This document shows positions 54,831-56,998 of a DNA stretch of 64,000 nt, piece by piece; positions within the stretch are counted from its first letter, which is position 1; every line of letters starts with the position of its first letter. This DNA is from Octopus bimaculoides (Eukaryota): NCBI RefSeq assembly GCF_001194135.2, contig NC_068989.1, positions 44,242,330 through 44,306,329 of the forward strand, read 5' to 3'. The translations under genes were made by a program, and so were the position numbers. The notes under the pieces are model-generated. The model searched no databases, was not told the DNA's origin, and saw nothing but the letters and a program-made list of their open reading frames with translations.

Positions 54831-54900
54831 CTTTAAATCAGAGACGAGTGGAGCAAATCCCAAGAGAAGAAACTGAGAATTGAAAGAGTTCAAGATAGTT
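54831..54900 (-). CDS. tim: Timeless exon ((V)TILNSFNSQFLLLGFAPLVSDLK)
   Basis: Acceptor actattttcag, donor gtaatt; 70 nt, phase 2-0. Matches [23 protein letters not shown]. Confidence 0.88.
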
Positions 54901-55784
54901 CTGAAAATAGTAATTAAAAATAATATAATTATTATAAGCTGCGTGTTAATTGAATCAAATACATACACATACATAAATATCTGTATGTACATATACATAC
55001 ACATACATAAATATCTATATGTATATATGGCACATAAAAGCACCCACTACACTCTTGGAGTGGTTGGCATTAGGAAGGGCATCCAGCTGTAGAAACTCTG
55101 CCAAATCAGATTGGAGCATGGTGTAGCCACCTGGTCCACCAGTTCTCAGTCAAATCGTCCAACCCATGCTAGCATGGAAAGCAGACATTAAACGACGATG
55201 ATGATGATGATATATACACATACATAAATATCTATATGTATATATGGCACATAAAAGCACCCACTNNNNNNNNNNNNNNNNNNNNNNNNNNNNNNNNNNN
55301 NNNNNNNNNNNNNNNNNNNNNNNNNNNNNNNNNNNNNNNNNNNNNNNNNNNNNNNNNNNNNNNNNNNNNNNNNNTATATATATATATTTATTTATGTGTT
55401 TCAGCCAAGTGGCTGCGGTCATGCTGGTGCACCACCGTGATATATATATATATATATATATAATCATCATCATCAATTAACATCTGTTGTCCATGCTGGC
55501 ATAGGTTGGATAGTTTGACCAGAACTGGCAAGCTCCACCAGTATATATATAGTTGAAAATTAAGATAAACACCAGTTCTGTCCATAACTCATACATAGAA
55601 AATGCCTCTTCCTACATTTCTTGAGGGACAAAGTTACAAATTGTTTTCTTAACTCTAATATTTTAATTGAAATTCAACAAAAATTTGCACCTTTTCCATT
55701 TACCAATTATGGAAGTGAAACTGAACTTGTTTCACCTCACATAAACAATGTATTGAAACAGTGTAGAATAATTTAGTCACTTAC

Positions 55785-55939
55785 ACAAGTTGTGAGCGGT
55801 TGCTGTTTTCAATAGGAATCAAACTCGCTATATTTCTGTCTGTTTCAATGAACACACTCATAACCTCAGAAATGTCAAAATTAAACAGGACTTCATCAGA
55901 TACTCTGCTTCCTTGAACATTTAGGCCACCAAGAACAAT
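55785..55939 (-). CDS. tim: Timeless exon (IVLGGLNVQGSRVSDEVLFNF...NSNRSQL)
   Basis: Acceptor ttttttgtcag, donor gtaagt; 155 nt, phase 0-2, fitting between the flanking exons. Sequence similarity is weaker than for neighbouring exons. Confidence 0.78.
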
Positions 55940-56538
55940 CTGACAAAAAACAAATTCAAAACAATTTTTAAGAATAAACAATAATTTCGATATAAAAACA
56001 AAGTGCCAAAAAACTTAAAAAAGTAAAACTTTTCTTTCTTTAACAGAAATATCCCTTCCTGTAATAAGAGCTAAGTTCTCTGAAATTCCTTCCTAATTTA
56101 CATTTCCTTCCCACTAACCACAAACTTTTAAATCAATCTTAGTTGTCCAAGAGGGCTTTGTAATGGCTATAGGTACAGCTCTTCTTGCTCAAAATAAAGG
56201 CTTCTTACTTTGGTGCTTGAATTAAACTCTTGTACACTAATGGTATGTCTTTTACTGGTCCCAGAGTGATGACAAGGCAAATTCAACTTTGACAGAATTT
56301 GAACTCAGAACATAGAGGATTCAAAGTAAATGCTATGAGGCATTTAATCTGAGAAAGTACTCTACTTTCTCAGATAATTATTCTGATTGAAGTATGGTAT
56401 AACATTAGATAGCTAATTTGTCGCAAGGTCAAAGAAAGAAAGTTTACATGTGTGGAAGATAAGAAATTGGATACAAGGATCTCTAGTGGACTACTCATAT
56501 AACAATAATCATCATTATCATCATCACTGTCCTTGCCC

Positions 56539-56602
<64 letters not shown>

Positions 56603-56725
56603 CAGGGTCAGAAATAAAGAGGTCATATTTATTTGCTACACTTAACATGCAGTTCTCAGATGTACAGTTTAAAATTTTTCTATCTCTTGTTACCCCTATA
56701 TATCTAAATTCACACATATACATAC

Positions 56726-56763
<38 letters not shown>

Positions 56764-56857
56764 ACACAGATATACAGACACTTTTCTAAATGAGAACGGA
56801 AACATTGTGCATTAGGTTATCACATATATATTTTGATTGTATAATAAACATTGAAAG

Positions 56858-56899
<42 letters not shown>

Positions 56900-56944
56900 C
56901 AAACATATATATATACACACACATATACATAAATATATAAATAC

Positions 56945-56998
56945 CTTATCTGTGTATAGAAGTGACAGTAACTGTACAATGTTAACAGACCAACAGAA
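56945..56998 (-). CDS. tim: Timeless exon (FCWSVNIVQLLSLLYTDK)
   Basis: Acceptor tctcattgcag, donor gtattt; 54 nt, phase 0-0. Matches FWGVTMVQLIALIYKDQ. Confidence 0.88.

Follow-up and report, generated by a model that had tools for sequence, protein, structure and literature searches.

In Drosophila, PER:TIM enters the nucleus after a delay that depends partly on the phosphorylation of a peptide in the loop joining TIM's two armadillo domains, ARM1 and ARM2, and on the NLS next to it. In the map of fly TIM, the Ser/Thr (ST) cluster occupies residues 270-290, the peptide in the ARM1 groove residues 283-303, and the NLS residues 545-578, with T90 and P92 contacting importin-α1 (bioRxiv 10.1101/2022.07.27.501640). 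The paralogous fold of TIMEOUT, mammalian TIMELESS and yeast Tof1 (a replisome fork-protection factor) has a loop between the same helical repeats. In TIMEOUT this loop is a conserved basic MCM-plugin of ~108 aa with the motif RHSRFGG(S/T)(Y/F)..K.(I/L)...D.(I/V).H. Among molluscs, cephalopod dTIM proteins of 874-920 aa have been described, and in some Mollusca the protein's central portion is shorter and lacks PER-binding #1 (Bullo et al., 2025, iScience, PMC12049834). The short cephalopod form of tim1 is real and already published (Bullo et al., 2025).

We analysed a 64,000-nt stretch of the Octopus bimaculoides genome (contig NC_068989.1; hereafter the window). In our reading, which we hold to be very probable as a whole, including the proposal on nuclear import made below, the minus strand of the window carries most of a cephalopod tim1 gene, orthologous to Drosophila-type timeless (dTIM), and the loop between ARM1 and ARM2 is a constitutive linker of ~50 aa from a single 155-nt exon, with no further exon hidden in an assembly gap or in the introns. 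What is new from the window is the exon structure, with the whole linker on that one exon; otherwise there is no substantive difference from known cephalopod dTIM. The features are collected in Table 1.

Table 1. Features of the octopus tim1 locus, in window coordinates.
Feature	Position	Strand	Details
Three upstream ARM1 exons, including LTEPIECLF	59945-59765, 58886-58774, 58301-58241	-	
Exon FCWSVNIVQLLSLLYTDK, last ARM1 helix, equivalent to fly ..MVQLIALIYKDQ	56945..56998 (54 nt)	-	acceptor ttgcag, donor gtattt, phase 0/0; aligned with 8dd7_B as far as residue 237 and with P0004 200-217
First intron, 1005 nt, fully read	55940..56944	-	TA, TG and AGT/GAT microsatellites, otherwise unique sequence
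Only sizeable in-frame AG..GT open stretch in the first intron, 69 aa, ..GGGGS(17)RGKDSDDDNDD.. (rejected as exon)	56448..56654	-	
Linker exon, whole 52-aa ARM1-ARM2 linker IVLGGLNVQGSRVSDEVLFNFDISEVMSVFIETDRNIASLIPIENSNRSQLV (IVLGGLNVQG...NRSQLV)	55785..55939 (155 nt)	-	acceptor tgtcag, donor gtaagt, phase 0/2
Intron holding an assembly gap	54901..55784	-	54944-55265 and ~55419-55543 are interspersed-repeat copies plus TA microsatellite
Assembly gap, 109 N, intronic	55266..55374	.	repeats on both sides
Exon (V)TILNSFNSQFLLLGFAPLVSDLK, start of ARM2, holds FLLLGF	54831..54900 (70 nt)	-	acceptor ttttcag, donor gtaatt, phase 2/0
Exon EILLSKSCNLDGSYFMWLLIFFLKMARIQEMDFSCI(R)	53725..53834	-	alignment to 8dd7_B and P0004, splice check
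Exon (R)EVVTVDIIGFLVYQGIDTFEELVISNQKKLETATKKK(R)	53284..53397	-	TKKKR encoded at 53297-53284, last base in the next exon
Further exons of this gene, downstream	51851-51736, 51278-51092, 49106-48908	-	
Downstream exons, approximate	~45968-45881, 43111-42965, 42259-42203, 38622-38422, 36568-36417	-	

The preliminary description had called the gene tim1-type, and bit scores, protein search and tree all bear this out. In a phmmer search against the PDB, fly TIM (8dd7_B) scored 91 bits (E=1e-24) and human TIMELESS 55.6-57.1 bits. The AlphaFold2 model of octopus TIM (pTM 0.84) had 8dd7_B (TM 0.73, the best) and 5mqi as its top Foldseek matches. Downstream of ARM2, in the exon set 36417..51851 on the minus strand, lies a TIMELESS_C (PAB) domain (PF05029, 51.9 bits against a cut-off of 23.8, model residues 504-605). 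The T and P of LT.P.ECLF are conserved, with octopus LTEPIECLF aligning to fly LTVPVECLF at residues 89-97 (T90/P92 of the fly protein). Relatives were found by exhaustive search of representative proteins, in which the closest match was P0004, a protein of 869 aa, followed by the 'timeless' proteins of Ostrea and Ruditapes at 123 bits, against ~36-50 bits for TIMEOUT-type proteins. Querying a word index of proteins with the joined translation of the three exons around the linker (93 aa) gave no match, the index evidently being devoid of cephalopod and mollusc entries, and with 385 aa it returned only three metagenomic TIM1 fragments, none of which spans the loop. In a neighbour-joining tree, a simple distance method applied here to 466 columns and 31 sequences, TIM1 and TIMEOUT separate in 96/100 bootstrap replicates, with the octopus sequence nested among mollusc TIM1s (entries named 'protein timeless'). 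P0004 is its sister (100/100 bootstrap), a position that suggests a cephalopod source. We give practically no credence to the gene being timeout (TIM2) instead, in which case the 'TIM2-like' character ascribed to the linker would be trivial: the fold and the flanking motifs are indeed common to both paralogues, but the scores and the tree place the octopus protein on the TIM1 side, and both the RHSRFGG motif and the 108-aa basic loop are absent from it.

The N-terminal peptide of TIM inserts into the flavin pocket of CRY. Exons for this end of the octopus protein (residues 1-78 in P0004 numbering) were sought between 59980 and 64000 and none were found; the ~78 residues lie upstream of 59945, in a gap, or beyond 64000. 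The junctions of the first eight exons were set by hand and then checked, and the boundaries past 48908 are heuristic.

The three exons between 56998 and 54831 have canonical splice sites and fitting phases, and their joined frame is open. That a single 155-nt exon lies between the exons encoding LYTDK and FLLLGF, as first noted, is confirmed by these sites and phases and by the mRNA of the relative: the exon aligns without gaps to exactly 155 nt of the mRNA contig L001. There is likewise no gap between 55939 and 56945; no run of N occurs between 55375 and 61212, and the first intron is therefore fully read. The exon at 53834-53725 continues the preceding one without a missing residue, so a second gap (53889-54285) also hides no exon.

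The short linker would be an artefact if one or more coding exons, possibly Ser-rich and acidic, lay in the gap at 55266-55374, whose length is merely estimated, or had been missed in the 1-kb first intron. We consider this highly unlikely. Further exons in the gap had been named beforehand as the finding that would speak against the short form, and none is indicated. Both flanks of the gap consist of interspersed repeat, of which the window contains 14-19 further copies, plus TA microsatellite, and the 52 nt that adjoin it (55265-55214) are identical to 55048-54997; the gap has the look of an assembly break caused by repeats. Across the gapped intron, the coding junction (..SQLV|TILNSF..) shows no gap in its alignments to human TIMELESS, P0004 and L001. 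Residues 83-405 of P0004 match residues 2-324 of the octopus model in one ungapped stretch (60% identity), and P0004 and two variants of it (at least 90% identity) are uninterrupted open reading frames on mRNA contigs of 3.0-3.2 kb from ten separate sequencing runs. As these transcripts of the relative (n=10 contigs) are gapless across the region, with no insertion at either junction, a hidden exon is unlikely. Published cephalopod lengths of 874-920 aa allow a variation of ~50 aa somewhere in the protein, and the first intron does contain an in-frame open stretch that is Ser-rich and acidic. We rejected this stretch as an exon: it results from reading an (AGT)n/(GAT)n microsatellite in its Ser frame, microsatellites of this kind occur elsewhere in the window, its acceptor is weak and lacks the T-rich tract present in all accepted exons, it has no Pfam match, and a counterpart sought in the transcript contigs of the relative was absent from 10/10. 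All transcripts compared are those of the relative; O. bimaculoides itself may have a minor isoform that includes a cassette exon such as this stretch. For annotation, the gene model across this gapped and repeat-rich region is correct, and the gap is of no special concern.

Drosophila TIM (8DD7 chain B) and the octopus protein both comprise ARM1 and ARM2, are collinear on both sides of the loop, and have the motifs FLL.G(Y/F)..LV, D.S.F.WL..FLK and TMMHH(V/I)(A/G)GD in common. The difference lies in the loop itself. In the alignment to 8dd7_B, the PDB chain against which the sequence of the fly insert including its NLS was also checked, fly residues 237 to 580 correspond to octopus model residues 138 to 186, so that fly 238-579 (342 aa, comprising the ST cluster, the acidic PER-binding #1 region and the NLS helix) faces an octopus linker of ~48-52 aa. 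The linker contains 8 S/T, 7 D/E and 3 K/R, with no basic cluster and no Ser run, and AlphaFold2 models it mostly with low confidence. A profile of the insect NLS/INMKGL block gave p=0.075 and 0.69 against the cephalopod linkers. The alignment and the loop survey given below thus corroborate the initial observation that the ~340-aa fly region, with its ST phospho-cluster and NLS, is missing. P0004, in which the C-terminal tail is also short compared with fly TIM, and the cephalopod dTIMs of Bullo et al. (PMC12049834) belong to the same short overall length class as the octopus protein. Within the clade, the central region with the ST cluster, PER-binding #1 and the NLS characterises insect and crustacean members; other Mollusca and basal deuterostomes lack it too (PMC12049834), and its absence is therefore compatible with dTIM membership.

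The preliminary description had likened the linker to a segment of TIM2, which would make it a relic of the TIMEOUT MCM-plugin. The loop is at the same position as the plugin, a pattern GG..VQG.....[DE]..L.F can be aligned by eye with two gaps, and this motif stands at a similar distance from the ARM2 anchor in octopus (58 aa) and human (70 aa). Even so, we found no statistical similarity to the TIM2 motif, an outcome that had been named beforehand as refuting the likeness, and we judge such a relic very unlikely. A profile of the TIMEOUT RHSRFGG..RDLIFH region scored -2.7 bits on the octopus linker (p=0.67) and -1.4 bits on that of the relative (p=0.44), each compared with 5000 shuffles, and Smith-Waterman alignment of the linker to human TIMELESS gave p=0.39-0.79. 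The best local path against the human protein skips the GGSYIVQG stretch and pairs LGG with LAGVG after FRDQ, not with RFGG. For the linker of the relative, one of eight comparisons reached p=0.017, with soft gap penalties only. Key residues of the supposed motif are changed in the relative, where octopus GGLNVQGS reads AGLNVPES, so that GG..VQG is not conserved; the motif occurs in no other mollusc TIM1 compared, and AlphaFold2 gives no β-hairpin there. The composition differs as well, with a K+R fraction of 0.06 in the octopus 50-aa loop versus 0.19-0.25 in TIMEOUT. We also rejected the idea that insect INMKGL, TIMEOUT YIVQGL and octopus LNVQG represent one ancestral motif, as the insect and TIMEOUT block profiles match neither each other (~0-2 bits) nor the cephalopod linker.

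Loop length varies widely within TIM1. In our survey it is 50 aa in cephalopods, 53 in Patella, 78 in Ostrea, 88 in Ylistrum, 99 in Haliotis, 147 in Sinanodonta, 172 in Ruditapes, 187 in Biomphalaria and 250 in Babylonia, compared with ~180 to 430 aa in insect-type and 106-109 aa in TIMEOUT-type proteins. The other mollusc TIM1s (Ostrea edulis, Ruditapes philippinarum, Haliotis, Patella vulgata, Biomphalaria, Babylonia, and CgTIM of Crassostrea gigas, 934 aa) resemble the octopus protein in falling in the same clade, in their conserved ARM blocks, in being much shorter than fly TIM and in lacking the insect-type NLS/INMKGL block. Unlike the octopus protein, they have loops of 53-250 aa that are rich in Ser and Asp/Glu and do not recognisably resemble the cephalopod linker. 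Ser-rich, acidic character is therefore not specific to insects.

These lengths bear on the suggestion that the octopus gene represents an 'ancestral, pre-insect' tim1. One part of it stands, in that the very long insert arose by expansion in arthropods; the other does not, because the Ser-rich, acidic loops of 53-250 aa in other molluscs and the constant ~108 aa of the paralogue make the ~50-aa cephalopod linker look trimmed rather than primitive. It is conceivable, though we rather doubt it, that tim1 originally had a short linker, which has been retained here, and that all the longer Ser-rich, acidic loops are later, independent expansions. Central regions are short in Mollusca, Annelida, Echinodermata and Hemichordata (Bullo et al., 2025), and the Patella loop likewise has just 53 aa. 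However, this loop carries SSSKSKSS and acidic runs and is unrelated in sequence to the cephalopod linker, the other mollusc TIM1s sampled have Ser-rich, acidic loops of 78-250 aa (S+T up to 0.28, D+E up to 0.26), and TIMEOUT and yeast Tof1 have ~100-108 aa at this place. An ancestral loop of ~80-110 aa that was trimmed in cephalopods would probably fit the sampled sequences with fewer changes. In our reading, the long insert of the fly is an arthropod enlargement of a loop whose length varies in TIM1 and is constant at ~108 aa in TIMEOUT, and cephalopods represent the short extreme.

A tim1 without the phospho-peptide and NLS in its loop shows that the timing device of the fly was added in arthropods and did not belong to the ancestral protein. 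We propose that the octopus linker would tether ARM1 and ARM2 closely. It lacks the cluster of SGG/CK2 Ser/Thr sites that in the fly fills the ARM1 groove as an autoinhibitory peptide, and it has neither the acidic PER-binding #1 region nor the basic NLS helix (fly 545-578). The groove residues that contact importin-α1 in the fly (T90/P92) are kept, and they would probably not be masked by a phospho-regulated peptide. Nuclear entry, if any, may then proceed via the ARM1 groove or by co-transport with a partner such as PER or CRY rather than through a kinase-gated NLS. From the fly data we infer both this import route and the loss of phospho-gating. In view of the short linker, one may ask whether PER binding or nuclear entry occurs in mollusc TIM at all, as Bullo et al. 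(2025; PMC12049834) already did.

The linkers of octopus and P0004 have the same length and register, and 28 of their 52 residues are identical (54%), DRNIAS being invariant. As this value is near the 60% identity of the whole proteins, the linker being about as conserved as the folded domains between octopus and this distant presumed cephalopod, it hints at a linker function outside the explanation proposed here. Rather than a passive spacer, the linker might act in cis in a way specific to the lineage, for instance by docking in the ARM1 groove as a non-phosphorylatable peptide or by binding a partner, and so replace the kinase-gated entry switch of the fly; we regard this as unlikely. If true, cephalopod TIM would time the clock, or act outside it, by a different rule.

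TKKKR, encoded at the 53284 junction, had been put forward as a substitute NLS, but as a classical NLS it makes a poor candidate. In fly TIM it corresponds to ..DLKPYLRRMHLVV, and in the octopus model it stands at the start of a predicted ARM2 helix (residues 281-306) that AlphaFold2 models with confidence (pLDDT ~87-94). The candidate is weak because of this location and because the position is basic across the family, namely in most TIM1s.

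The minus-strand gene is a Drosophila-type timeless (tim1), as the preliminary description had assigned. Among PDB sequences, the octopus TIM model, joined from the exons in the window, scores 91 bits (E=1e-24) with fly TIM (8dd7_B) and 55.6-57.1 bits with human TIMELESS. An exhaustive search covering 1.84 billion representative proteins returned an 869-aa protein (P0004) with 60% identity to the model. Next in rank, at 123 bits, came ‘protein timeless-like’ from Ostrea edulis and from Ruditapes philippinarum, then further TIMs of molluscs and insects; proteins of TIMEOUT type, among them the Antedon ‘protein timeless homolog’, reached about 36-50 bits. 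Neighbour joining on 466 well-occupied columns separates TIM1 from TIMEOUT in 96/100 bootstraps and places the octopus protein among the mollusc TIM1s. The AlphaFold2 model of the 324-aa ARM1-linker-ARM2 fragment (pTM 0.84) has 8dd7_B as its best structural match (TM 0.73), and a TIMELESS_C domain lies farther downstream in the gene, whose roughly 670 codons are spread over more than 23 kb.

The exons were read from the minus strand and their splice sites set by hand. Eight consecutive exons were established in this way: all have an AG acceptor after a T-rich tract and a GT donor, their phases are compatible, and the joined frame is open.

Eight consecutive exons of octopus tim1
Feature	Position	Strand	Basis
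tim1 exon	59945-59765	minus	splice sites, phase
tim1 exon	58886-58774	minus	splice sites, phase
tim1 exon	58301-58241	minus	splice sites, phase
LYTDK exon, ending ..LLSLLYTDK	56998-56945	minus	splice sites, phase
Linker exon, 155 nt, coding for IVLGGLNVQGSRVSDEVLFNFDISEVMSVFIETDRNIASLIPIENSNRSQLV	55939-55785	minus	splice sites, phase
FLLLGF exon, coding for (V)TILNSFNSQFLLLGFAPLVSDLK	54900-54831	minus	splice sites, phase
tim1 exon	53834-53725	minus	splice sites, phase
tim1 exon, ending ..TKKK(R)	53397-53284	minus	splice sites, phase

P0004 is the sister of the octopus protein in 100/100 bootstraps, and we therefore treat it as coming from another cephalopod. Together with two variants (at least 90% identity), it was found only in ‘Logan’ sequencing-run assemblies, on contigs of 2987-3192 nt from ten different runs, each with one uninterrupted 869-codon ORF and short UTRs; these are mRNA assemblies rather than gene predictions. 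Residues 2-324 of the model correspond to P0004 83-405 in one stretch of equal length, with no indel. At the nucleotide level, exactly 155 nt of the relative's mRNA contig (L001) align with the linker exon, flanked by ..TTTACTGATCAG (LFTDQ) and AGCCATTTTGAAG.. (AILKS). Splice sites, phases and this mRNA thus bear out the earlier reading that a single 155-nt exon stands between the LYTDK and FLLLGF exons.

An additional exon within the assembly gap 55266-55374, named beforehand as an objection to this layout, was looked for first, and none was found. The gap lies in the intron between the linker exon and the FLLLGF exon; both its flanks consist of an interspersed repeat (14-19 other copies in the window) and a TA microsatellite, and the adjoining 52 nt exactly duplicate 55048-54997, which is typical of an assembly break caused by repeats. 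The junction across this intron (..NRSQLV/TILNSFNSQF..) is ungapped against human TIMELESS, the relative's protein and the relative's mRNA. Given its intronic position in repeats and the collinear junction, we conclude that the gap contains no coding sequence; the gap 53889-54285 likewise holds no exon, because ..VSDLK/EILLSK.. is contiguous in homologues. The repeat itself (..catcatcatcgtcgtttaatgtctgctttccatgctagcatgggttggacg..) is short and present in 14-19 copies in the 64 kb (54944-55265, 55419-55543 and about 15 other places), often beside assembly gaps and TA or TG microsatellites, and probably explains several of the 12 runs of N.

The interval from 55375 to 61212 is free of N runs; the 1005-nt intron that separates the LYTDK exon from the linker exon is accordingly fully read, as had been stated. 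Enumeration of all in-frame AG..GT open stretches of at least 10 codons in this intron (56944-55940) gave one of size, 56654-56448, encoding 69 aa with GGGGS(17)RGKDSDDDNDD, which recalls fly TIM, also Ser-rich and acidic at this place. We rejected it as an exon: its frame is just the Ser-coding one of an (AGT)n/(GAT)n microsatellite, with like runs elsewhere in the window, a pyrimidine tract is missing from its acceptor, no protein family matches it, and nothing in the relative's mRNA corresponds to it.

Octopus TIM accordingly lacks the fly insert, as first described. The alignment stops at fly residue 237 (IYKDQHV) and restarts at 580, the octopus model passing over the same interval from residue 138 to 186. 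The fly 238-579 sequence used for this comparison matches 8dd7_B exactly, and the human segment used is identical to 7pfo_K 199-416. Absent from octopus are the ST cluster 270-290, which includes sites for SGG and CK2, a provisional groove peptide (283-303) that masks T90/P92, and the NLS at 545-578 (Lin et al., bioRxiv 10.1101/2022.07.27.501640).

The further proposal that the linker resembles TIM2 did not hold. The TIMEOUT-type loop has a constant length of 106-109 aa, a K/R fraction of 0.19-0.25 and the motif RHSRFGG(S/T)(Y/F).V...K.(I/L)...D.(I/V).H; its counterpart in yeast is the Tof1 ‘MCM-plugin’, which anchors the fork-protection complex on MCM. Scored against 5000 composition-preserving shuffles, a profile of this motif from 15 segments gave -2.7 bits (p=0.67) for the octopus linker and -1.4 bits (p=0.44) for the relative's. 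Smith-Waterman comparison of the octopus linker with human gave p=0.79 with standard and p=0.39 with soft gap penalties, and the optimal path pairs octopus LGGLNVQG with human LAGVGQG directly after FRDQ, not with the TIM2 motif stretch. The relative's linker reached p=0.017 with one of eight targets, with soft gaps only. Neither approach yielded the statistical similarity on which the proposal had itself been made to depend. Moreover, the residues behind the claim are not conserved, the relative having AGLNVPES where octopus has GGLNVQGS, and the other mollusc TIM1s examined contain no TIM2 motif. AlphaFold2 predicts one short helix and no hairpin in the linker, from an alignment that is shallow there (pLDDT about 45-48 across residues 151-180). 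The possibility that the insect INMKGL and TIMEOUT blocks are one motif was also rejected, as the profiles do not recognise each other.

The core of the short-linker finding is already published: in a survey of dTIM across animals that measured the ARM1-ARM2 distance, cephalopod dTIMs (874-920 aa) are among the shortest, in basal deuterostomes and certain Mollusca a shorter central part goes along with absence of PER-binding #1, the central region's exons have no similar counterparts outside insects, and PER binding by mollusc dTIM is questioned (Bullo et al., 2025, iScience, PMC12049834). Oyster TIM (934 aa) groups with arthropod TIM, and nudibranchs carry both timeless and timeout. The window adds the exon layout, in which one 155-nt exon encodes the linker, and clears the assembly gap.

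For every long hit we determined the length of the loop that separates two anchor blocks. This loop spans 50 aa in cephalopods, 53 in Patella, 78 in Ostrea, 88 in Ylistrum, 99 in Haliotis, 110 in one Daphnia paralogue, 147 in Sinanodonta, 172 in Ruditapes, 187 in Biomphalaria, 250 in Babylonia and about 180-430 in insect-type sequences. The suggestion that the octopus state is ancestral and pre-insect stands in part. Great length and the NLS/INMKGL block are arthropod features. Ser/acidic character is not an insect invention, since non-cephalopod mollusc loops contain up to 0.28 Ser/Thr and up to 0.26 acidic residues, and the short state looks trimmed. Given about 100-108 aa in the paralogue and Tof1, a moderate ancestral loop with independent trimming in cephalopods and in Patella would require fewer changes than a 50-aa ancestor; the Patella loop is unrelated in sequence to the cephalopod linker. 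The polarity is doubtful. Four further TIM1-type proteins on transcript-size contigs (P0030, P0061, P0031 and P0124) have loops of 74-146 aa, with P0030 and P0061 on a separate branch next to the molluscs. Possible identities are annelid, brachiopod or deuterostome dTIMs, and such sequences would help to settle the polarity.

A purely passive spacer is expected to drift faster than its surroundings. Identity between the two cephalopod linkers (28/52, DRNIAS invariant) is near the 60% of the whole aligned region, which suggests that the linker may be more than such a spacer.

TKKKR, put forward as a substitute NLS, is a weak candidate. It is encoded at 53297-53284, its R codon being finished in the next exon, and lies opposite fly ..DLKPYLRRMHLVV within ARM2. 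A classical NLS binds importin in extended form, and TKKKR sits at the N-terminal end of a confidently predicted helix (pLDDT about 87-94). Basic residues at its last two positions occur throughout the family, as RRLHL in Ostrea, Ruditapes and insects and K.LHL or HRMHL elsewhere; the relative has KKMK. Nowhere else in the 668 modelled aa do four K/R fall within six residues, and the relative lacks such a cluster, with KRVR in its tail instead. Octopus ARM1 retains the fly T and P in LTEPIECLF, and their mutation in the fly ARM1 groove blocks importin-α1 binding (Lin et al., bioRxiv 10.1101/2022.07.27.501640). By analogy, we infer that nuclear entry via this conserved groove is better supported than entry via TKKKR; co-transport with partners could be an alternative.

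Exons for the first ~78 residues, including the CRY-binding N-terminus, were not detectable in 59946-64000; they lie either inside the 812-nt gap 61213-62024 or upstream of the window. Towards the other end of the gene, the relative has an acidic, Ser-rich stretch of about 50 aa (HTEDEESSNDTDSEMSAYSNSE..) between ..AKYLF and LLEKQIQNINIES... The exon boundaries that our junction heuristic gave for the corresponding octopus region (42966-45968, minus strand), any counterpart of this stretch included, are uncertain. This second variable region could be a source of length differences among cephalopod TIMs.

The window also contains stretches that resemble transposable elements. At 6848-7636 (minus strand), three adjacent one-frame open stretches broken by stops (..VQDNTPCYTAKRVKDFL..MDWPPQSHNLNPIENVWKII..) encode what we take to be a Tc1/mariner-like transposase, probably a decayed DNA-transposon copy. 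Open stretches at 4509-4864 (minus strand), with ..LYGSETWCLKGRE.. and ..LRRTERATVREMRGMRLFDKRRIEDLMRMLG.., look like the C-terminal portion of ORF2 from a non-LTR retrotransposon.
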